Shown: positions 2,140 through 44,213, counted from the stretch's first letter. The stretch: DNA of 64,000 bases from Neoechinorhynchus agilis (GCA_051530055.1 CM121342.1:1770797-1834796), one strand, 5' to 3'. Notes: generated by a model not told the origin, from the sequence alone. Translations and numbers: made by a program.

Positions 2140-2790
2140 TGTTTCTTTGAGTTTCTGAGGGGAACGTTTTGTCTTGACCAAGACTTTGTGGTGGCAGTTG
2201 AAGAATGGTGCCTGCAGACAGGCGCTAACCATGTTCCCGTGAATGACCTCAGACAGTCGAACTGGGACAGACCTCTCGTCGCGCGAGCTCGCAGTTCTCT
2301 ACTTTCAGGTTCTCGCGATGGGGTCGTCCGAGCTAGATTGTTGGCAGTTTCGACACGAGAATCGAAATCGTTGTTGGAGGCTGTTCCTCTGGCATCTGTG
2401 GGAGCTCTTCTTACTGATGAGGTAACGATGATCGCAGCCCTTAAGACTTGGTCTCCCGATATGCATGCCCCATCGCTGTCGATGTGGGTCTTTGGTTGTT
2501 GCTTTCGGGCGATACGGTCTCGAAGGTTCTCACGCCATTCTGAGATCAATAGCGTCATTTCCCGGGCGTTGAGAACTGCGAACCTCCCCAACATGTTGGC
2601 AGCTCGGCACTCACTCTGCTCCAAGATCTCTAGAAGAGATTGAGAAAAACGACCGGCGACGCACGAGCAGGTGTATTCCTGCGACAAAATATCTCGCTCG
2701 CGGTACAACGAGGCAATGCTGCTAGCGTGATAGCAGCAGCCGAGGAAGGAGAGAAGCTCCAATTTTGCGGACGGTGGTGATTGCACGTTT
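2140..2790 (+). mobile_element. CRE-clade non-LTR retrotransposon 3' fragment, frameshifted and internally deleted
   Basis: Plus-strand frames give WDRPLV...RARLLAVS...LEAVPLASVG, LRLGLPICMPHRCRCG, SRHSEINSVISRAL and FLRQNISLAVQRGNAASV. The endonuclease core expected between RAL and the C-terminal helix is missing. Confidence 0.85.
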
Positions 2791-3389
2791 TGTGCTTTAT
2801 CATGTTCTACAATTAGAAGTTCTTTTTTTTTAATTTTTATTTTAGTGCTCGCAAGAAGGTCTACTCGTAATTTTGCTTCATATGCCTGAACAATATATCG
2901 ATTAATTGTAATTAAAAATGAGCTTGTATTTCCGTTAACGCAAATCTTGCCTTGTCACCTTCTTTAATCACTGATGTAATCTAAAATTCCTTTGCAACTT
3001 ACTTTTCTCAGTTATCATAGAATTGTCTTGTTTGCAGATTGAACTAGTCACGCTCGAAGAGCAAAGCTTATCAACAACATTTCCGCTGTTCGAATTTCCA
3101 AGAGTAAAGCTAAACGAATATAGTTTTTAATTTTAAGATTGCAGCAAGTTTTCACTTGCAAACATAAATACAAAGTCCATCGCTCCAGCGTCGCATTAAG
3201 GTTCCATGAATTATTTGAAGATTTTAAACATTTGTTTATGTAATAGGGAAGCGTAATCTATACACAAAAGTTGTACAAATTGCTCAGATTCAAATACTTA
3301 ACCGAATATTATACAGTTGGTTTTTGCTTCATATATAGCGACGATAAACTACGTTTTGTTTAAAAACTTTGCACAAAAACGATTGACTT

Positions 3390-8972: not shown

Positions 8973-11824
8973 TTCTGAAGTGGGAAGGGTGTTATTTTTA
9001 GACAAAATGTGGCTTTCTGAGTAGTAGAATCCTTCTTTGCTAAAAAAGACGAATGAAATTTGAGAATAAAAATAGATTCGTATACGCATGGAGCGATTGA
9101 TGTAGCAAGGAAAAATAGACACTCTCATCTTTTAATCCCATTCGCTTGAACTTTTTAAACCAATCTTTGTTCGATCGGAAATTCGGATGGCTTACAATGA
9201 TTTCTCTTTTCGTGTTTAATCACGGCGAAACCATCACTAATTGTTGCCAAAAAATTATTTTACCATAAAAAAACCAAGGAAAAGCCCTTAAAATAAGCAA
9301 GAACTTTTCATATATTAAGCGCAGCCTAAATTTTTAAGCCATTACTGAACATCATCGAGAGGAAATCCTTCGGGATGGTGACCATAATCCAATGCGAATA
9401 AAAAAATATTTCATTGAGAGATATTTCGAAAGAGGAAACTCCACCTCATTAATTTTCTAAAAAAATATTTTTGTTGTTTTGTAGACTCGAGTACGCGGGA
9501 TGGCTACGTCGCTGAATATTTTAATAAATTATGTTTTGTCCGGCATTGTGATTACCACAGCTCCGTATCTGAACATTTGAAATATATTCTATCCAATTGT
9601 TCCTTCAAGTGGATGCGTATTCTCAATGGCGAATCGTGTGAAACATCACCTCGGGAATCGACGGTCCCGTACACCCGAGTCAAGGCTACCAACTTAGGTA
9701 TCCCCACCACATCCATTTTTACATGCTTGAGAAGAAGGCTGAGGCCTTGAAAATTCGCAATGAAGAAACTCGAGTGTGTTACAATTCGCAAGTGAGAATT
9801 TTAAATATATCGCAATTTTTTTTACAAATGCAATATTATCGATCAAGGTTTAGAATAAATAAATTTTTGTGGTGAGAAATAGAGTTTAATTTATTAATTC
9901 CTACTTTTTAGGCCCGAAGAAATCCTACGAGACGGACGAAAAAAATATATCCATGAACAACTTCTTTAAAAGAATAAATAACCTAAACGTACTTTCTTGA
10001 GTCCCGGAACCAAAACATTGCGACGAAAAATAAGATCGATATTCAGAATACTGTAAATTGTAAAGATGTTATCACTTGGATTGTTTTTGATGAAGGCGAA
10101 ATAAAATTGAAAAATTATTTAATTTAATATTTTTCGTCTTCTACGCGTGGAACATCTTCAGAATCTCAATGTTAAGGCGCTCGGAACTTTAATTTGGGTT
10201 GGTAATTAGATTTGATATCGACGAATGGTTTCATTCGTCATTAAATTTGGTACCAGGCAACTTCTTATCCGGTTATGTCGACCAATACGAAAACCGAAAT
10301 TTTTAAATCCTTAAATTAATGTTCACATTTGTAAAATTGAAACTTTCTTCAAATAGCAATCTCCAACGATGATAATCAGTTAACCTGAGAAACCGACACG
10401 AAATAAAAGTCCATAAATGCGAAATTCGATTTCATCGCCGTAGAAAAGTGTTCATTAAAGTACTTAAGAATAAAAATGAAGAGCACTTCCTTTGAAAAGG
10501 CCGTTAAATCTGCATACTAACAAAGTAGTTCGTATTCTTCCCGAAGTAAACCTCATTATTTATACAAGCCTTTTGAACAATTAAACTTGATTATTTTAGT
10601 CGAATTGTTGGATGCAAATAACTCCAGCAGAGATCTGATTGAAAAGGTGAGCAAAATCCCAAGAAATATTGAATTATAAACTGATTAACAAGTCACTTTC
10701 TCCAAATTTTGAATTCAGTTTGTTGTTGAAGTGTTTAAAATCCGATCACTGCATTTCCTTCTAACATTTTGATCTTAAATTTTTTGAGCAAGTTACATCG
10801 AGAATTTGAGTCAGCGAAATTTCCATCTTGGTCTCTTTTAACCACAAGCACCTAATTTCAATGCGAAATCTTATAGGAAGAAAATTCGTTTTGGTTTTTG
10901 CTTAAAAGAAGTCGATATATGTATAGAAATGTTTATTTTCCAGGAACATTAAAAATTTATAAAAGTTCCCACAGGAATAACAAAACATCTTTATCTTCCT
11001 TGGGAATGCTGCATTCCCTTTGCTGAATCGCTAATTTTCTGATAAAAATTATTGGCTGCATTGCGACCAACCATTTTCAAAAACATTGGTTAAAAATTCT
11101 GCTTGGTCCGACAACAGCGAGGTTGAAAAATCTAGAGCGATACAGGTCGAGGCGCTACTTCAACAGGTTCTGAATTTTAATTTTTACTTTCAATCTCCAG
11201 TCAATCATTAGATAAATTTGGTAGAAATTACTCCGACGGTGCAGATTTTTCTAACAATACGGAAACCGCAATTCGTTGCTAATACGTGCGAAAATGCACA
11301 TCTTTTGAACGTTTGCGAAGAATTTTGTTTTGAACATTGATGAAAAAAGCGGAGATAAAACTTGTTAGCGAATTACTATTTGATATTTGCATCTTCGATG
11401 CCATGTTTTATTGAACATTATTTTCAGAAACGAAGATTCTACTGACTTTGAGCGTATAGACACCCGTCTCTTAAGAATCTCTCAGTGACAAATAATTTTC
11501 GACATTCAAATCAGTTTCCTCTTTAGCGAAAAGTTTATGCTCATTTATATTCAGGATTGAGTTCGTAAAAAAAGATACGAATTTCGTCGCTTCAATCGAC
11601 GACTATCTGAATGAAAAGCATCATTTAGTGACAATATTTCTGGAGAGCTTTCGAATGACCATTTCGTTGCAAAGGAGATAGTTTGTGGGGTTTTTTACTG
11701 TTTCAAAAAATTTTTTATTAAGGTTTCTTCTAAAATATACGAATAAAAAGAAGAATGATATGTCAAAAATGCACGTTGTTTTTTGAACATGCGATTTTTT
11801 TACAAGATGATAAGGTATTCGCGA

Positions 11825-12313
11825 TCAGAGAATACTTTTGAACCTTGATAGGATTCGTACGAAAACATCAACCAAACTTCCACCGAAAGTTCGACGTGAT
11901 TTCGAGCTTTCCCATGAGCTGATGTCGGCTAATCCATCATCATCATCGTCGTCGTCGTTGCTAACGACATCTTTTCGTCCATTACCCACGAACGAGATTG
12001 TTGATGGACTCGATTTATAAGCAGTGTGTAAAGGCAGATACTGATCTACAGAAGTTGAAACGATACATCCATTGTCTAATCTCCTTGATTCAGATAAGAC
12101 TTCAGGGACACCACGACGAGGAATGGGTTTGTAGATTACGTGACTTTGTTCGTTGTTATTTGTTGATGGAGGTGGATGAGGATGTACAAAATAAATTGGT
12201 TTCCTTTTACACCCACTCTTGTCTGTCCAAGTCTTAGAGAATTGAGGTAAAGAAGCAGTGGACGAATATTCGAGGTTCCGGGCATGTTCTAGTTTATTCC
12301 TCTTGAATAACAT
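11825..12313 (-). CDS. Uncharacterised ~162-aa single-exon protein, HPHPP/KPIPxRGVP family member B
   Basis: First ATG at 12313. Contains RKPIYFVHPHPP...HVIYKPIPRRGVP, shared with 3390-3875, plus a poly-Asp run. Confidence 0.6.
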   Translation of the reverse strand: MLFKRNKLEHARNLEYSSTASLPQFSKTWTDKSGCKRKPIYFVHPHPPPSTNNNEQSHVIYKPIPRRGVPEVLSESRRLDNGCIVSTSVDQYLPLHTAYKSSPSTISFVGNGRKDVVSNDDDDDDDGLADISSWESSKSRRTFGGSLVDVFVRILSRFKSIL

Positions 12314-14849
12314 TCTATCGCGAGTGCTCTGCAATGTTCAGAACGGTTTCTATAAGATATTGATTATCAAAAATGCGTTAATACTGCTCACTGAATTAAT
12401 CATAATCTCAAAAAATTCAATTGCATTCTCTTATTAGCCCAGAATTCGTATGGTTCGACTTATATGGGCGAAAAGGATATTTTACACTATTGTTGGCGTA
12501 GCGAATGGAATTATATAGAGGCCAGATTTTGCTTTGAATGGAGACCTTTTAAAGTTCTGAACAAAAAATTCATAAGTCATCGGAACCGACGATTCCGGTT
12601 CATTGACTAATGGTTATACATTTCCGCCGGCGACGTCTCAAGATTTCAAGAAGTAGTTTAAGACAGCTTTAAAGCGCACGAGCTTTCTGTTTTAAAGACT
12701 TGTTTTAAAATTTTCAAATGTACACTAGGTAAAAACGGTTTGAACAACACAATGTTGACGCTATTTTGATTGTCGAACTACAATGTCTAAGTTTTTGCAG
12801 CTAAATCGAAATGCATTTTTTTGTTTGATTGCGAAATGGATAACTTTCCTCTTGACATGATATTGTCGTGAACTATAGCCTTAATGTTGCTGATAAGAAT
12901 TTTGTGCGCAATGAAATGCAAGACTTCATTTGCAACTAACGACATTTCGATATAACAGTCACGTTCCTTGCACTCATGTTGACTGAAATAGATGGAATTG
13001 GAACCCCCTGAATAATATTGGTGTCTTTAGGTACCTCAATTTGCGACTTTTTCGTGCTTTTGAAATTCATCTTTCTGACTATACTAAAAGAGGCGAAATC
13101 TCTAGTTTAATTTAAATATTCAAAAGAAATTATTTTACTGTATAAGCTTCTTGCACATCGTGTTGATGTCTTTAGAGGTAGTACACAGCGAATGCTTGCT
13201 AGACCATACAAATGTGCTCCGTTAATTTCTGAAGATTAGATTTGACAAGTTTCTTAAAGATTAGACTTTTTTATTGTGGTCACGTCCCTTCTTTAATGAA
13301 GATGTAGGTGAAGAAAGGAGGGGCTAGTAGCTGCTCTTTGTCAAATGTCATTTTATTTGTCTACAAAAAATGATGAATTATGTCAGGGTTCGAGATGTAT
13401 TTAAACCACGATGGACAATTTTGTCAGTTCTCGTAGAATATATTCACTAAATAAGTGATAAATCAGTAATTCTTTGGCTGAAGTTTTTGTTAAAAGTGGA
13501 CGACACTTAACGAATTGTATTATGAATCCGGTTTCGCTAGTTTGTCGAATGCTCCGTCTGTCAAGGTTCGCCTTTATGGCGTTGCATTAATCCACCGTTG
13601 AGGCCTTCTCGCCTTCACCGTGCATCTAGAGCCTACCACTTGCTTAGATCAGGGTCCGTCACGAGGACTTTAAAGCGTAAATCTATTTTTGCGAGCATTT
13701 CGCATGAATCGCTAAATTGATGCACTTTACTGAAGAGAAATGACCATTTTTAGAGTTCCGGAATGCAAAATTATATCTAAATCGTTGAAATGACAAGTGA
13801 GTGCACTACTATAAGTGATCCAATCAAAATTGTGATCGTTTCAACTTTTTGTGCTTTGCTTCAATCTCGGCAAAAACACCCATCATCCGTAATGTAGGAG
13901 TAATGGCCCGGTGGATTGCATGTGATAAATGGGAGGCATTTATCCACAATCCAGTTCTATCATGTGCATTGTAGATTATCAGTGATTATATGAGTGGTTA
14001 ATGGATCACTTATCGAAGCGAAATGTGATAGATGGGAAGCCGTTGTACTTAATGTTCTTTGAGTAATTTTTTGATATGTTAAAAAATACAGTATAACGTC
14101 GTTTATACGACTCAATTGGGACGGGATACCATTCGGATGCGAGATTTGTTTCGGATAACCGAAAACTAAATGTAATGTATTCAGTTTTTTTAAGATAGAC
14201 TACAGATATCAAAGTTCTTAACATGCGGGGAAGTGGTCTTAGAAAAAGGAAAACTAAAGTATAATTACATTACTTTAACTTTATTTGTTTGAAGATTCTT
14301 GATGGCGGTGCGGAAATATCGGATTTTATAAATTCCTCCAATTTTCCGCCGTTTAACTTTATTGTTGATCATAATCACTATTTTTTCTGTACCAATGGAT
14401 ACCTTGGTTTTTTCTCTGTGAGGTCTATCATTCTCTTCTAGCAACGGTAATTGAGTAGGACAGCATTCTGATCTTTAATTTTGTAGTCGAAAATCACGTC
14501 GATTGGCAGTTAAAAGAATGGAAGAGGTTAAAATATTCATCGAACGTTTTTTCTGTTAAGCGCTAGCCTATGAATGCTATATGTCGGCTGACCTTAACTT
14601 AAAATACTCCGCAGGTCTTTGGAGTGTTTAGAAGTTGAAATCCGCACTAAATTGCTTTTACCTCATTCTCGCATTAAACTACGTGAACCGAATTGTGGAC
14701 ATCTCAAATTAGACATTACATAACGAATCCCTGATGACTTGTTCCACTCAAAATTCACTCATTAATGTACACTTTGATCATTCAAATCATTTTGAAAATC
14801 ATTAAACAAATACCAGGATAATATATCCATAAACTTGCATTTGTTTGAA

Positions 14850-17800
14850 TTACACAGGGAAGCGGCTTGATCCCTGTAAGAGGTTCCTTCCGTTCGCCGG
14901 GGGCGTAGGTGATTTCACATCAATTGGAGGTCGCTCGAATCTCAATAGGACTGGTGATCGTGATTGTAGAGGAGCATCTTCTAACTCCTCGCAGAGTATA
15001 ACCGGAACTCCCTTTTTTTTCAGTTTTGTTTTTGAGCCACGACTACCTGCCATCCAAATTCGTTGATCGAGCTGACTGCGGATGCGATCGGCTTCCATGT
15101 CACCGTAAAGGTAAATACATATTCCGATAATGATGGTGAGTAAAACACCTATCACCAGAATTAAAAGTGCCATCGCCGCCGCAACATTGAAATTTCCGGG
15201 CAAAAGATCACTTGGCTGACCGATGGTGCGGAAACTCACGATACCCTTTGTGCCTTGTAGGCCGTTGGTTTTTAGTTTCTGGTAGAAAATACGGTTCAGA
15301 TCGATCGACCGGACAGGTGCTGACCATCGAACGGACGGTGGGAGGACGCTATGAACAATCAAGTCACTTGCGTTCAGTTGAAAAACTTCGGCAATCTTTT
15401 GAGCGATTCGGACACGTGCTTGGGCCGTATTTAGGGCATACGATGAATTAAACTCAACAACGAACACCGGATCGCTGCGTATTGAAGAAAGTCTCAATCC
15501 CATTGAGCCAAACTCTATTCGTAGGTCTAATGATTGCTTAGAAAGTGCTAAAAGAGAGGAAATTTATTATTGATTATGGCGTGGTAGGAAAACGGGCTAC
15601 GTGTAAAAAGAAATCGGCACGAAATTCGCTGTAACGATTTTCCCGTATCAATGGAAAGGTTTTTTGTGCACCATAAACAACATTCAGTGATAAATGGTTT
15701 CCGAAGGAAATTGTTAAGGCTACGAAACGTCAACCATTTGATTGGTTAAAAAATGTGTTGCAGAATTTATAGAAAAAATTAAATAATCTAAACTTGAAGA
15801 TAAAAACGATTCTTAATTTTCACGTTTCTGAATTTCAGGTTAATTTATTAAAAAGATAAAGATCAGTTATCCAATATTTCGTTTTTATGCATATTAAATC
15901 TAATGAATTGATGAAGGCAAAACGAAAGTGAGCAGGGATATTATGTCCTATGGAAAATTCGGTTCTTTAAATCTTATGTATTTAACTTTACGAAATCAAC
16001 TTTTATTTGCTGCAAAATACAAATTGTCAAGGTTTTTCATTTTAGGATTCGCAAAATTCATTTAAAAAGTACGCTCTCGAGATGACAACATTTTCATTCC
16101 TTGACGATCCAACCTTGATTTATATCTATAAATTAAATATTCGAATTATTGGATATTAGTAGAAACATGTAATGTTTGCATACTAACCAATTAGTTTTGT
16201 AACTAAAAATATCAATTTTTAATTTTATTTTGATTGGCTAGTTTTTAAAGTTTTATAGAATAAGATTTGAAAGCGTTACATAAAGATTTTTCCACTTAAA
16301 ATTAATATCGGTTTCTGTACAAAATCTGAAAAGGCTCATGTCATCTCGCTCGACAGGTGGAACGCGAATGGCACAATGGACAAGACCCCAGACTCGCTCG
16401 ATACAAATTCCGGTCTATTTCGGTAATGAAAGCGAACTGTTGTATTAAAAATGAAGATTCCCGCCGTTTTCTGTGAGCCCAAGGGAACACCTAGATACCT
16501 CCCTCTGGTCTCATTGAACCTTTTTGTATTCTTCTCCTCACACAAACCGTAAACGACGTCTGCTGCTAAGCGGTGTTCGATGGCGAAGGCTGTTGTGCAC
16601 TTATAAAATAAATGTCAGATGAGTAATCCATTAATGGGAGAAAAGAGGTTACAAAGGAACCATTGCAAACAGTCCCGCTACTCATTGGTCTGGTTTCCGA
16701 CGACCACGCCGTGAAGCAGTTCGACAACAGACAGCCAATATTGTTGATTGTGGTGGCTAAGGGGTTGTCTCTAGAATTTTTCTAAGGTGTTGTATTTACA
16801 CAAATGCTTGACCGTACTGTCTCACCTAGAGACATTCCTAAAAAGTGGATTCTAATGAAATTTGACGAGCTTGAGTGAAAGAGGGAATGCCCTTGGTTGC
16901 ATAGGAGCCTTCACCAATCAGACGGCGACATACTATTTCTCATATAAATATTTACCTCTCGTTCCCAAGGATCTTATCACTTAAATGACAGTGGGAACCA
17001 TATTTCTCGGTAGGTATCATCTTCTATTGAAGGATCCAGAACCTCGTGCTTTATAGCGATAAAACCAGAAAGACGATCCAAACCGAAGAACAAGTATGCA
17101 TATTTGTACATAAGGATACAAAAGCGTCTTCCCTCGATATCTGTCGCCTAATGAAAAGAGAATCTATTTCTGACATGCAATGGCCCTGGCATTATCCCAC
17201 TTGCACGTGCCCTAGTCTATCCTTGGCACTCTAAATCTCTTATTTCATGTTTTCTCAAGATATCGATTTCCTAGCTTAAACACAACAGGTGGGTTAGGTC
17301 TAGCCTGCTTTCCATACGAATGTTATTTTGCAAGCAAGTGTAATCTACTAGACTTACGTTTTTCAAGTCTTAATACTTGCACAAGACCTTGCTCATCGGT
17401 CAGTGGTAAGCCTATCAACATTCCATTTCGGATGTAGAAAACGGAGTTCGGTTTGAACTGAAAGTCTAATCTGCTTATGGTATCCTTGTTGGTTCCGCTT
17501 CGTTTAGTTCCTGGAGCGAACAGCGATAACGGCACTTTCCATCGGAATATCTAAATGGACACAGGGAACGACTGGCAGGAAATGAAAAACGCGTCCGGGC
17601 TTGACCATCCGATTGTCTGAGATTTCGGTAAGAATAACGCCGGGTAGGCGATTCTATGATTGGTCTCCAAACTCAATTCTTAAAGACTAGTGATTTTATA
17701 GCCACTCAAATTCTATTCAAATAACCTAGATTTTGATAACTAACCTTTCCTACCGGTACTGTCAATATCACTTCAAGAATCTAAAAATTGGGTAAGTTGA

Positions 17801-18343: not shown

Positions 18344-19582
18344 TGTTCCCAAGTGAACAATTCATTCTCTCCCAGACTTCATCGTGCCATCGCGCTCTAA
18401 AACGAGTTGGTATAGACAAAGAAATAGTCTTTTTCTTCACGGTATTGTCAAAACATTCTGAGAAATTCGAAGAGCATGACCGTTTATTTCCTTTCCCAAA
18501 TGAGAAAAAATTCGTCGGAACTCCTGCGCTCACTATCGAGTCAAGAAATCTGATACTCTCCAAGAGAACTTTCCGGGACACTATATACAACCTGACAGAC
18601 TAATTATACACCAAGATTGCAAAAATGGAATCTCAATTTCTTGTACGATTTAAACATGGTGAAATTTTTTATATTGTTTTAGATCAGTAGTCACTCTTCA
18701 GCTTAGATTCACTTATGCTGTAGCAAAATCCTCGTCAAAATTCGATGACCAAAGTGATACACCTGCAATAATTTATCAATAAAAGGTGACGGGTGTTATC
18801 TATTGCACCTATGGAATTAGAGACGTTAAAACAACGTTTATCATCATATCGCTAGACTTTTTATAGTGCTTCCACCCACTAATATCTGTCATGCCAAGTG
18901 CCAATCGGTCGGGTACTGACATGTTATCCTTTTTAAAGTATTCGTATCGGTAGAGCCAGCCAAATACAGGGGTCAAAATGGAACAACTCTTGTCTTTTTA
19001 AAACCGCAATTCACAATTTTTGAAAATGACTTCATAAAATCGTGAATTAAATATTCAGCTTAATAAATATTACCATCTTAATTATACTTTATTGTAGGCT
19101 CGGTTGCATTTGTGGTCGTAAAATTTGATGGTCCGAAAAACCCTGTTCGAGCCAAATGTCACACTTCATTAAAGTAGCCTGATTTCTCAGAAATAGGCAA
19201 AAGACTGATTGCGTGTCCTGTCCAAGATTTTGTAATGACGAATTTAGCATGGAGCAATCCGATTTTTATACCTAAACCGAAGCTTTTCTTTTCAACTGGT
19301 TCATATTTCTCAGTATATTCCTGCTGCGGTTCAAACTTAGCTAATTTTTTAGTGGTGCAAGGGCGTGAATCAAAATGTCTTAGAATCAAAATGATCTTTG
19401 GTTTTGCTGCTAAAGTTGCCTTTTTAGTCAATATTAAAAAATACGTATTCAATCGTGTGAACGTATTAAAGTTTTTGCTCTTTTTTGCCTAAATTTTGTA
19501 TCAAACTGCCTTTGCCCCTTAAATATATTTTTTGGAATCTAACCGACATAATTTTTGCGAGCAGAAACATTCACGGAGCAGC

Positions 19583-22593: not shown

Positions 22594-25259
22594 TCACGAA
22601 TGTGATGAGTATTTGAGTTCTACAACTGTGAATGGCAACGACGCGTCTGAATTTTCTCCAAGGTTCGTGTTTTCTTCGTGCTCCTCGTTTCCGTATTTAC
22701 GATCTGTCCTTGATTTGGATGGTCGAATTGCTCTTCGTACTTGCCTCCAGCACAATCTGAAAGGACTCTCTGACAGTTTAAGTCCCTGAACAACATTTGG
22801 CGTGCTTATATTGAACCGCGGAACACTCTCATGGATCGGTGGCGGTTCCATATTGCTATACTCCAAAAAGTCACGTCCCTTTTACATATTGTGGATAATT
22901 TTGGAGACATGGAAAAAAGTGAACGTACAGTAACGGCTTCAAGGCAACCAAGTAAATAGAAGTGTTGATGTTGAATATTGTCAAGTTCCGATTCAATTGA
23001 AGAGTTTCCTGACTTAAGGTCTTTTCTGTACTTTATGTATGCATTTGTGATCGCAACTTTGGCTTGGTGCAGTCTTGATTGTTGACTTTTCTAAATAAAA
23101 CAGAGAATAATTTTGAAATTATACTTAATATGAATGCTCGCCTTTTGTGCGTTAACTTTATCGGATCTTTGACTTTGACTGTAGATCCTACTAAAGTTGT
23201 TGACTATAACCGGAACAGGTAGTGCAATCACGAGAACTCCACTTAGAGCACATAAACCACCCACCAACTTGCCAAACCATGTTTGAGGAACCATGTCCCC
23301 ATATCTATCAATGAGTTATGAGTGTTGCTTAAAGTACGAGATGAAATATTTAAAAATTTATTTTAAGTGCTTTTTTATTGTGAAAGTAGAGTGCTAACGA
23401 TATAGGATATCATTTAAATTTATTTAAATATGGTTTAAAATAAAAGACTGGTGTTTATCGATGAAATTGGTAAGTAGTGAATCGTGGGATTTTCACAAAT
23501 AAAAAGGGAAGGAAGCAACAACATCACTGGAAACTGCTCTCGCATTATTTCGTTTACAAATTGCATCCTTTTAAAACATTTTAAACGGGGAATAACATAA
23601 AATGGTTTGTTTCTACAATTATCTTCCATCAAAACACCGAGAAGGTTAATATTTGATAGAGTTCTCAGTTGCGTTTTACAGTGCGACAAAAGTAAATGTC
23701 ACAAATGTCATAGCCAAGATTCAGGTGATCCAAATCGACGTGAAATTTTAATTATCATTTATACAAACTTCAATGTCGGTGACTCAAAAATAGGAGAGTT
23801 ACTTTAAAGCAATAATATGAAATTTCGTTGAATAGAAATGAAAATTGGACGGCAATAGACTTTTTATGGAACTATTTTCAAAAATATAGTCATTTCCTTT
23901 TTGACAGCTGCTTAGTGCTGATCCGCTTGTTGATGTCTAACAAATTTTGTTACTTCTTTAAATGCTATTTAATTGGAGATAAGCGTAAATTTAGGATTCC
24001 TAATATCTGAATAAAGCCAAATAATTCAGTTACAATAGATAAAAACCTTTCCAAATTGAAACCCGCTCCCGCAAAGACGAAACAGGCATACCCGAGAGTG
24101 GTCAGCGTAACAATTGTGTACCAAGCGGACACCGGAATGCTGACAAAAGTAGTGTCCGGAACATTCCTCTCAGTATAATACATTGTAGTAGCAAAGATAA
24201 CGATAACGAGCGACATTGAGAACACAAGGAATCCGAGTTCTTTGGCACAGCTTTTTAAAGTGTATCCGAGAATCCTTAAACCTTGTGAATGCCTTGAAAA
24301 TTTGAATATCCGAAACACGCGAAACACTCGGAGAGTAACGAACGCTCCGCCGAGTTCTCCTTTGGTTGACATTGCCAGGCCGGTGTAATACGGCATTATA
24401 GCCACTAAATCAATTATGCTCATAACGCTTTTTACGAACTTCATACGGTTTGCTGAAGCATACAATCTTAGTAAATACTCAACCGTAAAGATAAGGACAC
24501 AGGCGGTATCGATAACAAAGAACTGTTTAGGATATCGAAGTCCGCATGAGATGGTTTTGTTAGAAGTTATATTCCGTCCGCATGAGACTGTCTCAATAAG
24601 GTTTGTAAGAACCGAAAGCGCAATAAATACGCCGAGAACATAGTAGAGAAAGAGCGCTGACTTGCTAGAATGTGGAAACTCAAACGCTTTCCATATCTTC
24701 TCTCGGACTGTCTTAGGGTCTGCTTTGCCATAAGATGGATTCCCATACGATCCCATTGAAAATCCTTCTTTTGGCTTACACATTCCATGTCATCATCCTC
24801 TACAATAATATCTTGAGTGCGTTCAAAAACTTCTCGTCTTCGTTCCAAATACTCTTCATAACAACATTCGCCGATCATTTCCTGGGCCAAACCGAAATAG
24901 GCTAACTCCTCTTCATAAGCACTAACGCATTCTCCTCTTGGAAAATGCAATTTTCCGGTCCGATAAAAATTGATGATGTGGCGAAATAGTTCCGGATCAC
25001 GATCGAAAAAATATTCGTTGTTGTCTTCATCGAAGAAAAACTCTTTTTCGTTTGAACCCAGTAAAGAGTCTGGAAATCGAGCTAGAGTGCTCGACCAGCA
25101 CTCAAAACGCTTTCCACTTACGTTCATGATAATCTTTTCGTCAAACATGGCCCTTTTGCTCGCCTTCGGCGGGGACGGTAGTGGTCGTTTTGTCAATGGA
25201 ACCCATGCGATGGCCGCAGCCTTCGCAAACGGGTACCATGCTGCTGTACTTGTCATCAT
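22594..25259 (-). CDS. Shal (KCND): Voltage-gated potassium channel Shal/Kv4, 5 coding exons
   Basis: [15 protein letters not shown]-terminus, T1 domain ([13 protein letters not shown]), S4 [15 protein letters not shown], pore TLTTLG|YGDMVP, S6 [13 protein letters not shown], then C-terminal [15 protein letters not shown]. Confidence 0.95.
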
Positions 25260-28339: not shown

Positions 28340-29333
28340 GATTAGTCCCGACTCTAGAAATGAATCTTCTGTTTCGCCTGTAAAGAAACTGAGTTCTCAC
28401 AGAGTTACACAATTTAAAAAGTAGAACACTTATTCACGCGAGTGATTATGTAGAATCAAGTAATTTAATAAGTTCGGCCCTATAGTGCTTCGATGTTTTT
28501 TTCTTTTTCACGCGGTGAAAAAAGCACGAATGCTAAAACTCTTGATAAAAAACTTTTTGTCTCGTCCGTCAAGAAACTGATTTTTCACCAAGTTAAAAAC
28601 CTTAAAAGTAGCAAATTTTTCACTCGAATGACTATGAAGAATCAAGTAATTTGACAGGAAAGTTCGGCTTTTTAATGTCTCGATTGTTTCTCTCTTTTTA
28701 AGTTATGAAAACAAAGCATGAATTCTATAACGTTAGTTAAATAAACTCATTTGTATCTTCCGTCAAGAAACTTATTTTTCACAGAGTTCAATAATTTAAA
28801 AACTGACACTTTTATCGAAAGTGATTACGTAGAATCAAGTTAGCTAATAATAAAGATCTGCCTTCAAGTGCCTCTATTGTTTTGGCTTTTTGACACATTG
28901 AAGGAAAACCCACGAATGCTTTAACGCTTTTTAAATGAACTTTCTATTTCATCAAGAAACTGATTTCTCACAGAATTCAACAATTTAAAAACTAGACAAT
29001 TTTTCACATGAGTTACGATGAAGAATCAAGTAATCCAATAAGAAATTCGGGCCTTCTAATGCCTCGATTTTTTGGTTCCTTTACACAATGAGAAAAAACC
29101 AATTCTACAACTTTTTATAAATGAACTTTTCATTGTGAGTCAAGAAACTGATTAATAGCAGAGTTCGATAATTTATATACTGGCAAACTTTTACCGAGAG
29201 CGACTATTAAGAATCAAGTAATCTAATACGAAATTTCGGACTTATAGTACCTCGATTGTTAATCACCCTTTACATGGTGAGAAAAAAACATGAAGGCTAC
29301 GACGCTCGGTAAATTAACTTTTTCTCGTGAGTC
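28340..29333. repeat. 190-bp tandem array, left block (5 units)
   Basis: The AAGAAACTGA-like anchor recurs at 28383, 28571, 28765, 28954 and 29142 (spacing 188-194). Each unit carries GAATCAAGT. Confidence 0.95.
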
Positions 29334-29680
29334 AAACCACCACCGACAACACCAATGCCACCATCGACGACACCGATGCCACTACCGACGCCACCGCTGC
29401 CACCACCACCACTGACGACACCGATGAAACCACTACCGATGACACCGATGCCTCCACCACCGACGCCACAGATGCCGCCACCACCGACGCCACCGATGCC
29501 ACCACCACCGACGACATCGATGCTTCCAACAAAGACGACGACACCGATGCCACCACCACTGACGACACCGATGAAACCACTACCGACGACACCAAAGCCT
29601 CCACCACCGACACCACCGATGCCGCCACCGACGACGACACCGATGCCACCACTACTGACGACACCGATGCCCACAATATG
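29334..29680. repeat. (ACC/GAC/GAT)-based minisatellite at the 5' end of the CRE insertion
   Basis: About 24-30-nt units such as ACCACCACCGACGACACCGATGCC, open in several frames (TTTDDTDA and poly-Pro/Thr readings). Confidence 0.9.
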
Positions 29681-32439
29681 AAAACGAAAACTTGCCTGCC
29701 CAGTCCGAGCCACGTGAAGAGAACAACGCCGATGTAATTGTTTTAACTTCATCAGCCTAGTGTAACACACGACCGAGCTTCTCAACAGGATTCTGTGAGC
29801 TTTGTGATGGGATTTTCTACCTGACGAAAACAGGAGTTCTTATCGTCCATGGACCCGTAATTGACGCCGCGGCGGTTCTGGTTCACCCCCCTAAGTCCAT
29901 TGATGGTGGTCGCATAAAGCCCATCACCAGTACAAAATGAAATTCCATTTGTAGAGAATATTGTGCGAGTTCTGCCCAGGAACCAGGTCACAAAGAGATT
30001 CACTTCTCTATTGACAGACTGCATCGAGACTAACTCAGAGTTGTCGTGGATGCGTTTCTTTGTGTTCCTTGTTCTAGTATTTTCCGCTGGTGATGTCTCT
30101 AAAGGATCTCTGACCCCAAAAATAAAAGAGTGAATAAGTTCTTTTGACGAAAAGTTTACTCAATGCCTTTCGGCAGCATGCGAGCTACGTAAGGAGTGTG
30201 TCCAGGAGCCTGGCGACCGCCGCAACGCAAGTCAGCCGCTTGCTGGATGCGTTTCTTCGAAGCTCACAGACGGAGATGTCAGAGGAGCAGTTCGTCTTTT
30301 AACATCAATGGGCAGTATCGCCAAAGAAAACGAAGAAACTTTACTAGCTCTTCGTTCCAAACATCCGAGTTATGGCGGTCGGCAGTATTTCGTGAAATCC
30401 TCCTCCTTACATACGATCCCTTATGTTTTATCATCGAAATCAGAGTTGAAGATAGCAATCTCCTCTTTTGCTAACGGGTTAGCTCACGGGCTTGACGAAC
30501 TCTGGCCCCAACACCTAAGGGATATGATTTCCTTTTCAGTAGATGACGCTGCTCAGTCCCTTGAAGATGCATTATTACGCTTAGTTGACCAATTTGCAGG
30601 GGTAGAGCTGATTCCGAAAGCAACTGAGCTATTTTTAGAGGCATTTTTGTGTGCCCTCGCAAAAAAGGAACGTTTGATTCGTCACATTGCAATTGGAACA
30701 ACTCTGCGCCGCTTAACAGCAAAAATTTTAAATAAAAGGGTCAAGGAAAAAGTAAGGATGCTGTATCGCCCTACTAAGTTAGGCTGCTGTACACCTTGTG
30801 GCGCAGATGCGATTGTTTATTCACTCCGCACGTTTATCACCGAAAACTCAAAACCGTGCGTGGTCTTGAAATGTTATTTCAAAACTACATTCATCACAGT
30901 TCTTTGAGCAAATTTACCAGAAGTAGTTAGAGATCACGCACTTGAAGCATTTCGCTATTTCGTTAATGCTTATGGGACTTCAACTCCCTTGTTGTTCTAT
31001 AACCACGTTTTGTGGTATGAAAGAGGAATTCAACAAGGGGATCCTATGGACCCAAATGCTTTCTCACTCGCAGTCAATCTGGTCGCGCACTCTCCAGTTC
31101 AGCTTTAACGGCTGGTACCTGGATGATGCCACGCTCGGAGGTAACCCCTCCGAAGTACTGCGCGATTTGGAGACACTCGTGAAGGAGACGGCGAAAATTT
31201 TTCATTGAATCGAATGCTGCGAAATTCGAGATTTTAGTGATGAACGTGGAAGATGAGGCGCATTGGCAAACAATCGTGAACTATTTTCAGAACCTGGCCT
31301 CCTGGATAGAATTGGTAACTCTATACCGGTTGAATCTTGTATTAATCTGTATTTTTAACTCCAACGTTGAAGCAGAGATTGCCAGTCTTCAACCGCAACT
31401 TTCGGTGCCTCTCGAGCTGCAGGACGAGGCCTGGCGTCAAGCGTCCTTGCCTATGTCGTCCGGCGGTTTGGGTATCCAAAAAGCAGCATATATTTCTCTG
31501 CTAGCTTATTTGGGATCGTATGAAGCAAGCCGCAAAATATTTCAATCTTTTCTTGTCGAGAATTACACTTTGGATGAAGATTTCGTGGAGGCTCTTAATC
31601 TTTGGTGTGGAGATTTAGGCAGCGAGCAAGTCCCCGTCAATGGTTGCAAACAATCAGTTTGGGACTCAGCACTGGTAACGAGAATTCATAACTCTTTAAT
31701 TTTAGATTCTCGTTATCTGGTGAACCGAACTCGGTTCGGGTGCTTGGCTCAACGCTTTTCCAATCGCCTCTGTGGGTACCCTTCTCTCCGACTAGACAGT
31801 AAGGATTGCAGTGTCCCTAAGACTTGGGGCACCGATGTGCACATTCCATCGCTGCCGTTGCGGAGCGACCGTGGAACCATCGCCACGCCATGGTCTCATT
31901 TGTCGGCAACAGGATGAATTTGTTCACGACACACCGAAGTGAACCCAATTCATAGTCGTGCCCTAAATACTGTGAATGCGCTCAACATCCTAGAGCCGAC
32001 TCGATGTTCGTAGACCAGACGGTTTCACAATATTCCCGCCTTCTCTGGGACGCCACGTGCATGGACACGCTCGCAGCAAGCAATATAAAATTTGCCACTA
32101 TTAAACCAGGGGAGCAGCAACTGCCGCTGAGAAACTCAAAAAGATTAAATACAGGACCTGAGTCGAAATCGTTATTTTGTTCCCTTTGGCGTCGAGACAC
32201 TCGGGTTGTTTGGTACCGCGGCGATGGACCTGGTCAAGCAATTGTCTAAGAGACTGAGACGAATCACTGGCGATCCGAGAACAGGGGCATTCCTCCTACA
32301 AAACATAAGTCTGGCTGTGCAACGACGGAACGCTGCATCCGTCCTTTCGACCGTTACACCAGGACGGCAGCTGAGTGATCCAGAGCGGTGGTGCGAATAA
32401 TTTCATGCCCGAAAAAGTACGAACTGAAACATGAACTTT
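29334..32439 (+). mobile_element. Near full-length decayed CRE-clade non-LTR retrotransposon inserted in the 190-bp array
   Basis: Zinc knuckle CELCDGIFYLTKTGVLIVHGP, KLTDGDVRGAVRLL...LRSKHP, IRHIAIGTTLRRLTAK, GIQQGDP, WYLDDATLGG, QASLPMSSGGLG, LLWDATCMDTLAAS and FLLQNISLAVQRRNAASV. Multiple frameshifts and stops. Right junction uncertain (32400-32440). Confidence 0.92.
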
Positions 32440-33510
32440 AAGAAAATCAATAATTTCAAAACTAGACAACTTTTCACACGGGTGAGTATGAAGAATCAAG
32501 TAATATAATAAGAAATTTCGGCTTTCTAGTGCCTTTTTTTAGCTCTTTTACACGATGGTAAAAAACACAAATTTTACAACTCTGTATAAATCAACTTTTA
32601 TCCCTCGTGAGTCAATAAACTGATTTCTCACAGAATTCAACAATTTAAAAACTGGCCGACTTTTATCGAGAGTGACTATGAAGAATCAAGTAATCTAATA
32701 AGGAATTCCGGCCTTCTAATGCCTCGATTTTTTGGCTCCTTTACACAATGAGAAAAAACCAATTCTACAACTTTTAATAAATGAACTTTTCCTTGTGAGT
32801 TCGTTCTTGGCGCAAAAAATAAGCATTGCGGTGCAGCGGGGCAATGCGGCTAGCATTTTGGCCAGCGCCGATGAATAGGAGCGTTGAAGAAACTATAAAT
32901 TATGTATGCTTGCTTAAAAATTAAAAAGATTTAAAAAAAAGCCTATTAAAGAAACTTATTAATAGAAGAGTTCGACAATTTAAAAACTGACAAACTTTTA
33001 TCGAGAGCGACTATGAAGAATCAAGTAGTCTAATAAGAAAATTTGGCCTTATAGCACCTCGATTATTTTGGCTTTTTAACAAGGTATGAAAAAATAACAC
33101 GAATTCTACAACTCTTGATAAATGAGCTTTTTCCTCGTGAGTCAATAAACTGATTTCTCACACAATTCAACAATTTAGAAACTGGACAACTTTTCACTCG
33201 AGTCAGTATGAAGAATAACGTAATCTAATAAGAATTTTCGACCTTCTAGTGCCTCGATTTTTTTGGCTCTTTAACACGGTATTGAAAAAGCACAAATGCT
33301 CTAACACTTGATAAGTGAACGTTTTCCTCGTGAGTAAAGATAACTGAGTTATCACCGAATTAAATAATTTAAAAAAACAACCCAACTTCTATCGAGGGTG
33401 ACTATAAAGAATTTAGCAATTAAATATTAAAGTTCTGCCTTATTGCGCCTCGATATTTTTGGCTCTTTAACACAGAATGAAAAAAACACGAATGTTCCAA
33501 CGCTTAATTT
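32440..33510. repeat. 190-bp tandem array, right block (5 units, interrupted at 32801)
   Basis: Anchors at about 32440, 32614, 32949, 33144 and 33336; same unit as the left block. Confidence 0.93.
32801..32948 (+). mobile_element. 5'-truncated CRE-clade insertion (C-terminal codons, 3' UTR, A-run)
   Basis: Translates SFLAQKISIAVQRGNAASILASADE*, followed by an AT-rich 3' UTR and an A8 run at 32933-32940. Flanked by the two halves of a 190-bp unit junction. Confidence 0.88.
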
Positions 33511-39549: not shown

Positions 39550-42500
39550 ATGTCAGTTGTCTTCGACGACTTCTCCGACTCGGATTCCGATGTCGCAACA
39601 GTCGTAGAGCCTACTCATGACTCTCTTGTGATTCACAGAGATGGGAAATTAGACGAAGAGCGGGATTTACTATTTCTAATTCAAAAAATCAGAAGAATGG
39701 ATAATCCACTTGAAACGCTTCTTTCACTTAACATGGCAGTTAATTCCATTGCGACCGAATCGTCAGTGTCTAGCGTCCTCAATCAAATCTCTCAAAGTAT
39801 CTTACCAGTCATATCCATTCGAGATCGACTCTTTTTAAGTCAACAACTTGAACTTATCGGGCGTAAATCTCTTTTAAAAGTCGATTTACAATTGCGGACG
39901 TTCTTAAAAGCGTTACTTAACGGCTACGAGGGAGTTGATGTGCTCGGTAGATGTTTTATTCTCTCAAGCGTGACACAATTATTGAGAATTTGGTCATCGA
40001 CGAGTGTAGAGGTCACTGATAGACTAGTTCGTTTGGCCGATACTTATCATCACCGAATGTGTACTATGGAGTTTATCGAGTTCGTGGATGCAATTTGTTC
40101 TCAGGCGGCGTTCAACGTGGTCTTTGCATCTTTATTAAACAATCAGTTATCTAATGAAGAGTTCGACGGTCGATTGGCGTACTTTGCTTTACAAATGGGA
40201 CGCAAAAGGATTTTAAACGCTCAATTGCGTTCTCGTGTTGTTGAAGAATTGAACAACCAACAAGTGTCTGGCGAGATTTACGTGAGTATGCGAACCCTTG
40301 CTCTATACTGTCTGCATAATCCACGATTCACAAATGAAACTTTGGCAGTGATTTTTGAAAAGGCAAAAAGTTCATTGGCACTCATTAGCGATGAACATTT
40401 GAAACTCATTTACAGATTAGCTTGTAAGAATGCCCAGTATTGGAACGAAAATAACATTCGAGAAACTGGGAATCTTCTTGTTCGTGTAAAATCAGATGAT
40501 TGCAAATACGTTTTGATTGGAAGTATTAAACAATTGATTAAGTCAAACGATGCACTAAGCGATGTTCAGAAATTGTCTTTAACTGAAACTCTTGCTCGCG
40601 TTGTCTCTAACTCCGAAAATGACTTGGTGTCCCTGGAAGCGCTAAGTGTTCTTTCAAATCTTAAGAATTCAAAAGCGTTGCGCTCTTTCTGCAGTCTATT
40701 TAAAGGAACACTTGCGTCTATATTCAATGAAAACAATAATCATAAACATAAAGCTACAATGAAACTAAGACGTGTATTGAATATTTTGCTAAACGTTTTG
40801 AATTTGAGCCATGTACCTCTTAAAAGAAAGATCCATTTGGTTGGGTATTTACTTGAAACAATTAATTTAAATGAGACAAAGAATGGTACAGTGGTTGTTT
40901 GTCTAAGGAAAATTGCCAGGATAAACCCTGATATTATTGAACCACATATCGATAAAATCTTACAATACATAGTAGTGATCGGTCAAAATGTTAATTCTCT
41001 GAGTCTTATATATTCAGCGACTCTGGCTTCTCCATCCATCGAAATCAACCACAAACAGCAGTTTGGTGAGATTGCGGAAGGAGCATATTCGGATTGGCAG
41101 TTATATTGCTTGGTAAGGGAGTGCTGCTGTCAAGGACTGTTTCATTTCGCTTCGATGGCCATAAAGGTGATTTTGAAGAGACACGAAAATCGCGGGACAC
41201 GAGATGGCTAATTTTTGTTGCTCAAATGCAATAACAGAAATTTTTTATACCGTGTTGTTTTCTATTTATTAACCCAAATCGATAAATTGACTAAATTTCC
41301 TTTCAGTGTCTTTTAGTACCAGAAACTGAATACAAGCGTAGTCCTAATAAAATTGTTTTCCTTAAATGTATTTTAAACTAATGACAAAAATTCGGCATCT
41401 CGTTTAAAAAGTGCTTTTTGAGATGCTCGTCAAAAATGTTTTTGTTCATCATCTTAAAGATGTGCAAAGCTGAAACAACGATTGTATCAAATCGGCCAGA
41501 TTCTCTCATGGACGCCCTCAACGAATACAAACAATGTCTAGATCATCTCATGTTGTACCGACCATGCTTAATATCCATCAAAACAGATATAGCGACCAAG
41601 GAATTGATTTTCAAGACAAAACTTCGATTCGATCATATGATTAACTTCATCAAAATACGACAGAGCATGCTTTTACTGGGAAATGCCTTATTCTTATGGA
41701 TGCGCCCTACACAGCTAGACGTAAATTCCGCTGAAACAATGACAGTAAGCCACGTAACATTCCGAATCGAAATGAGGTTTCGTCAATGTATTTATCTTCT
41801 TGAAAATATATTCGACACAATGTTCACCTGTGATGAACAAAGTATTCAGCTTATTCTTGATGTTATTAGTACAGTAAATGATCTCAAACAAATCATATTA
41901 GATGTTCTTCACCAGAATACAAACTCGAATCCAAAGTTGAAACTTTACTTCCGAGAGGACACCTTAAGCGATGCATTCGATAAAAACGTCGACGAACTGA
42001 AACGTGTATGTTCGGAGTTCTTTCTTAAGCCCCTCAGACTACCTCGAAGCATTTTTCGACGCAATAAGGAAACTGTCGTTCATGCCGAAATTGAATCAAG
42101 CGCCAGTAATCGAATGGGAATCTCGCAAACACTCAAGACGTAAGCAGAATTATTTACATCCCAGGGCACACGCAAACGCGCGTCCACACACGTATACACA
42201 ACGAAACGATAAACTTTATGCACACAAATACACCCGCCCAAGCGCACACACGCGTGTAAGCACGCGTACGCAACGACATCGAACAGATCCATTCGCACAA
42301 ATACACTCGCCCACGCACGCACACAACAAACACAATACGGGCCCATTCGCAGAAAAGAACTCGCCCACGCACGCACACAGCGACCCCAGACGGATTCATT
42401 CGCACAAATACACTCGTCCATGCGCACACACACGCCCACGGCGCGCGTATGTACGCGCACCCAACGATACCGAACATACCTATTCGCAAAAATACACTCG

Positions 42501-44213
42501 CCCACGCACGCACAGAACAAACCCAAATGGGCCTATTCGCACAAATGCAATCGCCCACCCGCGCATACAAACCCACTTATGCGCGCTCACTACACCGAAC
42601 AGATCCAGTCGCACAAATACACTCGCCCACGCACGCACACAACAAACACAACACGGACCCATTCGTAGAAAAGAACTCGCCCACGCACGCACACAGCGAC
42701 CCCAAACGGATTCATTCGCACAAATACACTCGTCCATGCGCACACACACGCCCACGGCGCGCGTATGTACGCGCACCCAACGATACCGAACATACCTATT
42801 CGCAAAAATACACTCGCCCACGCACGCACATCAAACCCAAATGGGCCTATTCGCACAAATGCAATCGCCCACCCGCGCATACAAACCCACTTATGCGCGC
42901 TCACTACACCGAACAGATCCAGTCGCACAAATACACTCGCCCACGCACGCACACAACAAACACAACACGGACCCATTCGTAGAAAAGAACTCGCCCACGC
43001 ACGCACACAGCGACCCCAAACGGATTCATTCGCACAAATACACTCGTCCATGCGCACACACACGCCCACGGCGCGCGTATGTACGCGCACCCAACGATAC
43101 CGAACATACCTATTCGCAAAAATACACTCGCCCACGCACGCACAGAACAAACCCAAATGGGCCTATTCGCACAAATGCAATCGCCCACCCGCGCATACAA
43201 ACCCACTTATGCGCGCTCACTACACCGAACAGATCCAGTCGCACAAATACACTCGCCCACGCACGCACACAACAAACACAACACGGACCCATTCGTAGAA
43301 AAGAACTCGCCCACGCACGCACACAGCGACCCCAAACGGATTCATTCGCACAAATACACTCGTCCATGCGCACACACACACGCCCACGGCGCGCGTATGT
43401 ACGCGCACCCAACGATACCGAACATACCCATTCGCACAAATACACTCGCCCACGCCCGCACACATCAAACCCAAATTGGCCCATTCGCACAAATGCAATC
43501 GCCCACCCGCGCATACCAACCCACTTATGCGCGCTCACGACACCGAACATACCCATTCGCACAAATACACTCGCCCACCTGCGCATACAACAAGCCCAAA
43601 TGGGCCCATTCGCAGAAAGGAACTCGCCCACCCGCGCATACAAACCGACTTATGCGCGAGATAGTGCCGAAATAACGGATTTTAAAATGAAATCATTTCA
43701 ATTTCATCGGCCGAAAACAACCAATATGAACAACCCAATCTTCGAACATACACACGAATGCACACCTTGGTATGGACATACATTATTAGCCCATCATTTA
43801 TTCAACGTATTTCTGGTGCTCGATGTAAACCCTGCGGCCAATCACCGTCTCGACCGTTTGAATGCCTTTTGAATCAAGATCTTGTCATTACTGTTCATGG
43901 GCGTTTCTCATACAATACGTCTAAATCGCTGAGAAAAGTGCACAAAGTCTCTGCTTCAGTAGAAGGGGTCCTTTTATATGACGATCAGTCTAGGAGTCTG
44001 AGCGCTAACAATTTCACAATCATTAATAATCAAAGATGTGATTGCCAAGGAGAATCTTCAACGTTCTATCTGACTCTTTTAATTCCTAGCAAGGAGTACA
44101 ACATTTCAGCGTGCACTGTGATGTTCAACATCCACCTTAACTTATTTGATGCGCTAAATCGACAATTTCGAAATTTTAAGATCTTGCGGACGTACGTGAA
44201 ATTTATACAGTGA
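39550..44213 (+). CDS. INTS7: Integrator complex subunit 7-like; last exon boundary uncertain
   Basis: Long helical-repeat-type exons with WQLYCLVRECCCQGLFHFA, FIKIRQSMLL, LRLPRSIFRR and LVITVHG...RKVHKV, collinear with INTS7 motifs. Donor GTAAGC near 42140 precedes the repeat-filled intron. Confidence 0.7.
42165..43660. repeat. ~315-bp higher-order tandem repeat inside an INTS7 intron
   Basis: Anchor CCAACGATACC at 42461, 42777, 43091 and 43409 (spacing 316, 314, 318). Each unit is built from sub-repeats with core ATTCGCACAAATACACTCGCCCACGCACGCAC. Confidence 0.95.

Follow-up and report, generated by a model that had tools for sequence, protein, structure and literature searches.

A decaying satellite array occupies positions 28383-33510 of a 64,000-nt stretch of the genome of the acanthocephalan Neoechinorhynchus agilis (GCA_051530055.1, CM121342.1:1770797-1834796), hereafter called the window, and is interrupted there by two retrotransposon insertions. 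The larger of these, F1, is a complete but dead element of a type that we class among the retrotransposons without long terminal repeats (non-LTR retrotransposons) with a restriction-like endonuclease (RLE), also called RLE-type long interspersed nuclear elements (LINEs). The smaller, F3, is a stub of a different lineage of the same type. Further copies were sought in the window and in four 20-kb loci of the same assembly (L001-L004), which were reached via annotated proteins, giving 145 kb in total. The features of the array and of the insertions are collected in Table 1.

The array is made up of 10 head-to-tail units of 188-195 bp with a period of about 190 bp, as delineated by BLAST with unit u4, by nhmmer and by a MAFFT alignment, and is surrounded by AT-rich animal DNA. 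In the u1-u5 stretch, matches to the unit profile have E values of 1e-41 to 1e-53 in nhmmer, and Tandem Repeats Finder (TRF) gives a period of 186. According to BLAST and nhmmer, the satellite is confined to three segments of the window, and its phase is kept across both insertions. Pairwise identity among the 10 units is 60-90%. Where the array is uninterrupted, junctions between units read GTGAGTC/AAGAAACTGA or GTGAGTC/AATAAACTGA (the slash marks the junction), GTGAGT being found in only 6 of the 10 units. No Rfam family matches the units at gathering thresholds, and nothing relevant appears at E<=10. The idea that the satellite is an RNA gene (spliced-leader RNA, U2 or another small nuclear RNA (snRNA), 5S or tRNA) is unsupported, given this null result, the divergence of the units and the incomplete occurrence of GTGAGT. 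In the literature searched, no published acanthocephalan spliced leader was found.

Table 1. Satellite segments and retrotransposon-derived features of the window.
Feature	Position	Strand	Remarks and basis
F2 fragment, 5'-truncated, with an internal deletion of about 250 bp	2153..2803	+	outside any repeat; tblastn
Satellite units u1-u5	28383..29333	+	about 188-194 bp each; u5 ends ...TCGTGAGTC at 29333
F1, full-length dead RLE-type non-LTR retrotransposon, about 3.07 kb	29334..32407	+	three-frame translation, tblastn, copy comparison
24-nt tandem repeat, 14 copies of ACCACCACCGACGACACCGATGCC, in the F1 5' untranslated region	29336..29671	+	TRF; comparison with L001 9920-10000 and L003 9400-9540
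3' junction stretch after F1	32408..32443	+	32 nt CCCGAAAAAGTACGAACTGAAACATGAACTTT, then AAGA; absent from other F1 copies
Satellite units u6 (beginning at unit position 21) and u7	32444..32800	+	u7 ends ...CTTGTGAGT at 32800; BLAST, alignment, nhmmer
F3, 5'-truncated stub of a different RLE-LINE lineage, <=148 bp	32801..32948	+	translation, tblastn
Satellite units u8-u10	32949..33510	+	u8 starts AAGAAACTTATT at 32949; BLAST, alignment, nhmmer

At the 5' side of F1, the last satellite base (29333) corresponds to unit position 188, within ...TCGTGAGTC, and the element starts at 29334-29337, where the sequence reads AAA/CCACCACC; microhomology makes the assignment of AAA (29334-29336) ambiguous. 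The remnant of an open reading frame extends from 29679 to 32400 and ends in ...LQNISLAVQRRNAASVLSTVTPGRQLSDPERWCE followed by a stop codon. It retains the reverse transcriptase (RT) motif WYLDDATLGG around 31110, a CCHC knuckle around 31870 and RLE remnants (RRPDG..., WDATCMD) at 32005-32060, and by our count in the three-frame translation it has accumulated at least five frameshifts and at least five in-frame stops. The 3' end of the element is TTTCATG at 32407, where four F1 copies, having ...GAATRATTT(CATG) in common, begin to diverge; the 3' untranslated region (UTR) is very short, with 7 nt. In the 5' UTR, the copies in L001 and L003 carry a single 24-nt unit, so that the 14-copy repeat of the window is a copy-specific expansion.

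After F1, AAGAAA occurs at 32440 and the satellite continues from unit position 21 onward at 32444, unit u6 being devoid of positions of about 7-20. A preliminary description of this DNA had the array resuming at AAGAAA after each insertion. This is confirmed at 32949 and at 32440, with the correction that the large element stops at 32407 and leaves 32 nt before the second of these points. Because F1 ends at 32407, the stretch 32408-32439 is not element sequence. It shows a weak resemblance to unit positions 141-180 (p 0.014-0.016, local alignment with shuffles) and matches the upstream unit u5 no better than it does the others, so that the earlier suggestion of a decayed target-site duplication at 32410-32440 is not supported. 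We also considered a 3' UTR common to F1 copies and running on to AAGAAA, by which microhomology priming would have been possible, and rejected it since the four copies diverge right after TTTCATG. Similarity past the F1 end gave p values of 0.04 for the L002a copy vs. the window, 0.24 for L001 vs. the window and 0.77 for L001 vs. L002a.

At the 5' side of F3, the last satellite base (32800) corresponds to unit position 187 (...TTGTGAGT) and homology to the element begins at 32801-32804, with ambiguous bases AGT/TCG at 32798-32803. The coding part is reduced to the last 25 codons or so, (S)FLAQKISIAVQRGNAASILASADE followed by a stop codon at 32876-32878, and is matched at 32795-32866 in tblastn by two intact relatives, P0007 and P0008. 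Downstream of the stop lies a 70-nt AT-rich stretch with an A8 run (32933-32940) that recalls the UTR of a butterfly relative. The sole F3 copy known is this stub, and its 3' end can be placed only within 32886-32948; the array restarts at 32949 with unit position 1. The possibility that the stretch after the stop is a decayed partial unit was rejected, its similarity to the unit not being significant (p 0.17-0.45). An exact AAGAAACT, corresponding to the first 8 nt of the satellite unit, is present at 32887-32894, 8 nt past the F3 stop, and recurs at the array restart (32949). From base composition we estimate a p value of about 0.005 for its occurrence inside the F3 stretch, and it may represent an early 3' junction or a target-like UTR sequence. 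As the preliminary description had it, the two insertions have one unit position and one orientation in common, with 5' junctions at GTGAGT(C)/ for both F1 (29334) and F3 (32801); once microhomology is taken into account, these junctions are no more than a few nucleotides apart.

The nature of these elements was approached through their relatives. A 257-residue piece of F1 has 2109 relatives in a representative library (best E value 3e-34), and the homologue listing shows the RLE-LINE group to which the window elements belong to be abundant in Lepidoptera and other arthropods. Three intact relatives (P0007, P0008, and P0034; 926-1156 amino acids) were used in tblastn, where the F1 alignment covers residues 31-913 of P0007. 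All three contain Pfam RVT_1 at E values of 2e-20 to 7e-20 and F1 keeps WYLDDATLGG, as is characteristic of a reverse transcriptase of the non-LTR type; Pfam gave no matches with the broken pieces of the window. In the full-length relatives, Pfam detects no AP-endonuclease domain. One of them, P0008 (1156 amino acids, from an ENA assembly), is a domain variant within the group: its RT is preceded by an OTU cysteine-protease domain at the N-terminus and by two C2H2 fingers.

For the C-terminal module, the test was made on a 271-residue piece that is intact in a sister lineage (minus strand of L002). In 64 homologues, residues H79, C81, C83, H93, C97, R106, H107, D141, D157, K187, and Y191 are invariant, and these columns fit a CCHC, RH, D, D, K..Y pattern. 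An AlphaFold model of the piece (pLDDT 93.6) matches seven R2 retrotransposon structures in Foldseek, with E values of 1.5e-5 to 4e-4, a probability of 1.0 and 208-273 aligned columns. Comparison of the same piece with the sequences of the Protein Data Bank returned only noise and no R2. A CCHC motif followed by a restriction-like endonuclease of the PD-(D/E)xK family, in proteins devoid of an AP-endonuclease, is therefore what the group possesses, and the endonuclease type named in the preliminary description is borne out by the conserved CCHC, RH, D, D, K columns and by the likeness of the AlphaFold model to R2 proteins. With RVT_1 in the relatives, the conserved RLE columns and the predicted R2-like fold, the window elements are best classified as RLE-type non-LTR retrotransposons.

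Since the two insertions agree in unit position and orientation, it could be imagined that one ancestral insertion gave rise to both through unequal crossing-over or gene conversion within the array, F3 being a deleted and diverged duplicate of F1. Arrays do duplicate blocks, and this one contains a duplicated unit pair, u4 and u7 being 90% identical and u5 and u8 81%. However, the insertions sit at non-corresponding junctions of the pair: F3 lies between u7 and u8 with no insertion between u4 and u5, and F1 follows u5 with no insertion after u8. Neither insertion was therefore carried by the duplication of the unit pair. Moreover, over 63 homologous coding nucleotides F3 and F1 have 59% identity, which is no more than F3 has with F2 (63%) or with the element of the butterfly Bicyclus (73%), whereas the flanking units remain 81-90% identical. 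F1 copies are 76-87% identical to one another at the nucleotide level, and F1 and F3 are thus different lineages; they also differ in C-terminal length, stop position and 3' UTR. We conclude that the two insertions are independent. One event with subsequent array dynamics is in effect excluded, a shared origin being very improbable indeed. On this point, including the difference between the two C-termini, the identity values and the structure of the unit pair agree with the preliminary description.

The preliminary description went on to propose that this repeat is the programmed target of an animal CRE lineage. The 145 kb contain 10 copies, representing four lineages. Five are F1 copies (window, L001, L002, and two in L003), three are F2 copies (window 2153-2803, L002 on the minus strand, and L004), one is an F4 copy (L003) and one is the F3 stub of the window. 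The window F2 is 87-92% identical in nucleotides to the L002 copy, which, with one stop in about 475 codons, is the least damaged of the copies seen. A search of the window and L001-L004 with the unit profile found no satellite units near the eight other copies, four of which are F1, and TRF placed none of the eight inside other tandem arrays; one F1 copy is situated upstream of an unrelated satellite of 211 bp, at a distance of about 540 nt. The 3' flanks of four F1 copies are unrelated and have no common motif. Relatives in Pycnogonum (a sea spider) and in Bicyclus (where the copy is inside an intron) are dispersed and lie outside repeats as well. A third homologue search for further N. agilis copies yielded none, and none of the other proteins collected maps to this species. 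The closest fragments (P0114, P0071, P0135, and P0151) all come from GCA_051530055.1. Strict target specificity for the satellite is not what these copies display, as 8 of the 10 in the 145 kb, and four of the five F1 copies, lie outside it, F3 being represented by one copy. For F1, a programmed target in the repeat is not supported. Unrelated flanks in other genomic copies are also what the preliminary description had named as speaking against its proposal.

The structure of the junctions was examined as well. Flank-vs.-flank alignments with shuffles reveal no significant target-site duplications at the F1, F3, F2, L001, and L004 copies (p 0.12 at the window F1), and no direct repeats were seen, with one exception. 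At L003 2440-3339 (minus strand), an internal F1 fragment devoid of both element ends lies between perfect direct repeats of 32 nt, CAGCAAATTTCTATAATTAATATCGCAAGATT. The arrangement resembles a target-site duplication on either side of a copy truncated at its 3' end, an unusual product for target-primed reverse transcription (TPRT), and suggests that nicks were staggered by about 32 bp in at least some events. We rejected a hairpin or cruciform formed by GTGAG...CTCAC at the satellite junction, as folding of the DNA was no better than that of shuffled sequences (z -0.3 to -0.7) and the downstream arm is absent at the F3 site.

How two lineages came to enter the array at one position can be approached by considering chance. 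If two insertions in the array are taken as given, the probability that they agree in orientation and have 5' junctions within 1-2 nt of each other is about 0.8-1.3% (3-5/190 × 1/2; our estimate). In terms of density, two copies are found in the 1.9 kb of the array vs. one in the other 62 kb of the window, plus three unascertained copies in about 78 kb of the loci. Taking a background of about one copy per 35 kb, we estimate a Poisson probability of about 1e-3 for at least two copies in the array, with a further factor of about 1e-2 for the coincidence of position, these figures concerning two events considered post hoc. Because of these two values, some real preference is argued for. At the same time, most copies sit in unrelated, non-repetitive DNA, so that the F1, F2, and F4 families are not dedicated to the repeat. 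We favor, at roughly even confidence, a reading in which generalist RLE LINEs encountered a local hot spot in the satellite, without a programmed retrotransposon-target pair. In this scheme, two generalist elements, F1 and F3, would have integrated independently by TPRT into two different units of the decaying satellite of about 190 bp, both 5' (top-strand) junctions falling at GTGAGT(C)/AAGAAAC. The hot spot could stem from a weak preference, for sequence or for chromatin, on the part of the zinc-finger and RLE machinery, a weak site preference being plausible, to which better survival of insertions within satellite DNA may have been added.

Several observations weigh against this reading. 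There are only two events, and the window was chosen for them, which entails a look-elsewhere penalty of unstated size. The 3' sides differ, with 32 nt after F1 vs. up to 62 nt after F3. No GTGAGTC/AAGAAAC-like motif is seen at the junctions of the other copies, and hence no sequence rule can be stated; nor is there any unusual DNA hairpin at the junction. Finally, as the copies were reached via annotated proteins, those buried in satellites may be under-sampled.

A rival reading is pure coincidence and retention, in which non-specific elements landed twice in neutral satellite DNA that tolerates insertions, with junctions coinciding by chance. The N. agilis genome is compact, with a coding portion of 31.6% (PMC12690905), and neutral landing pads are accordingly limited. 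Insertions of these families are found at many unrelated places, the F1 and F3 insertions do not match on their 3' sides, and the finding was picked post hoc from a scan. Nevertheless, the genome is mostly non-coding and retention alone cannot explain an enrichment of about 60-fold, while a common orientation with junctions within 1-3 nt has a probability of about 1%, and two hits in 1.9 kb one of about 1e-3, by our estimates. We therefore hold coincidence to be unlikely, though a serious competitor. Somewhat less probable in our view is that at least one lineage is target-specific, with an endonuclease and a DNA-binding module recognizing GTGAGTC/AAGAAAC. F3 would be the candidate, F1 would have a weakened specificity and the other copies would be off-target. 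Two lineages at one position and in one orientation, in an array strongly enriched for insertions, are what such a mechanism would produce. RLE clades are mostly target-specific in four of five cases, weakly specific families with many off-target copies exist (PMC4640811), and F3 is seen at this site alone, albeit as one copy. On the other hand, every F2 and F4 copy is outside the satellite, as are four of the five F1 copies, in flanks devoid of a junction-like motif, and close relatives in other phyla are dispersed. Units that are 60-90% alike, with GTGAGT in 6 of 10, would also make a poor long-term home. The narrower proposal that F3, and ancestrally perhaps F1, belongs to an undescribed RLE lineage of Acanthocephala homing to GTGAGTC/AAGAAAC of the satellite of about 190 bp is more doubtful still. 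If it were true, it would define a new retrotransposon-target pair with a plain satellite as the target, in place of an RNA gene, a microsatellite or a telomere.

Among described systems, the closest behavior is that of weakly target-specific families of the NeSL group, namely Utopia of reptiles (U2 snRNA gene) and YURE of the sea squirt Ciona (the U2-derived satellite U2_sat) (PMC4640811). These are also RLE-type LINEs with a single open reading frame, of which some copies occupy a fixed position in a tandem repeat or satellite and many lie elsewhere. Their 3' ends are precise and their 5' junctions more variable, and different families can be found in one array (PMC4640811). The likeness has limits, since the repeat of the window has no Rfam RNA-gene match, only two hits are involved and off-target junctions carry no target-like motif. 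RLE LINEs with dispersed copies and no dedicated target are also known among R2-like elements that lack site specificity, such as those of the German cockroach (PMC7650587), and in the HERO clade, which is largely non-specific (PMC4640811). However, there is no report of those families striking one satellite position twice.

With the 28S rDNA-specific R2 elements (8gh6, 8iby, and 9dou), the window elements share the C-terminal linker, CCHC and PD-(D/E)xK fold (Foldseek E value 1.5e-5, probability 1.0), a homologous RT (phmmer E value 1.7e-8 over about 215 residues) and presumably the TPRT mechanism. They differ in that the fold alignment shows only 16-20% identity, indicating a very distant relationship, in that copies here are dispersed and in that the F1 3' UTR is 7 nt long. 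Rfam finds no rRNA in the window, and neither a 28S insertion site nor a close R2 RT, as expected of members of the R2 clade, was observed. Elements of the CRE clade (CRE1/CRE2, SLACS, and CZAR of trypanosomatid spliced-leader genes, and MoTeR of fungal telomeres) are likewise RLE-type LINEs with a C-terminal CCHC and endonuclease; for the elements described here, this clade label of the preliminary description is putative. Members of the CRE clade, SLACS among them, produce long target-site duplications, which is reminiscent of the one F1 fragment, in L003, found between perfect 32-bp direct repeats. In contrast to that clade, the target in the window is neither a spliced-leader gene nor a telomere repeat and most copies are outside repeats: no Rfam match was obtained, spliced-leader RNAs and snRNAs included, and the other copies are in unique DNA.

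R2 and other target-specific RLE LINEs are under development as site-specific gene-insertion tools, and they inform how early retrotransposons avoided host damage. If a lineage of N. agilis does home to the satellite site, it would provide a new specificity module and the first case from the parasitic branch of Syndermata. As the evidence stands, several old and dispersed RLE-LINE lineages inhabit a compact acanthocephalan genome and two dead copies occupy one satellite position. The immediate use lies in the repeat annotation of the N. agilis genome, the array being a candidate hot spot and not yet a discovery.

Other repeats were noted along the way. Within 9 kb of L003, three mutually different satellites of about 200-211 bp are present (11020-13285, 14457-15160, and 18906-19370), the first with 10.8 copies and 96% matches. 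All three are unrelated to the satellite of the window, and satellites of about 200 bp are seemingly common in the genome. In the window, positions 42276-43658 contain 4.3 copies (96% matches) of a tandem repeat of 316 bp, rich in C and A and with nested sub-repeats of 53-125 bp, which differs from its surroundings by a local GC content of 0.52 and a GC skew of -0.35. Finally, positions 23196-23308 on the minus strand match the potassium-channel RNA editing signal of Rfam (RF00485) over its full length (72.8 bits for a gathering threshold of 51; E value 6.7e-13). This match implies that the acanthocephalan-like genome has a channel gene of the Shaker/Kv1 type with an ADAR editing hairpin.

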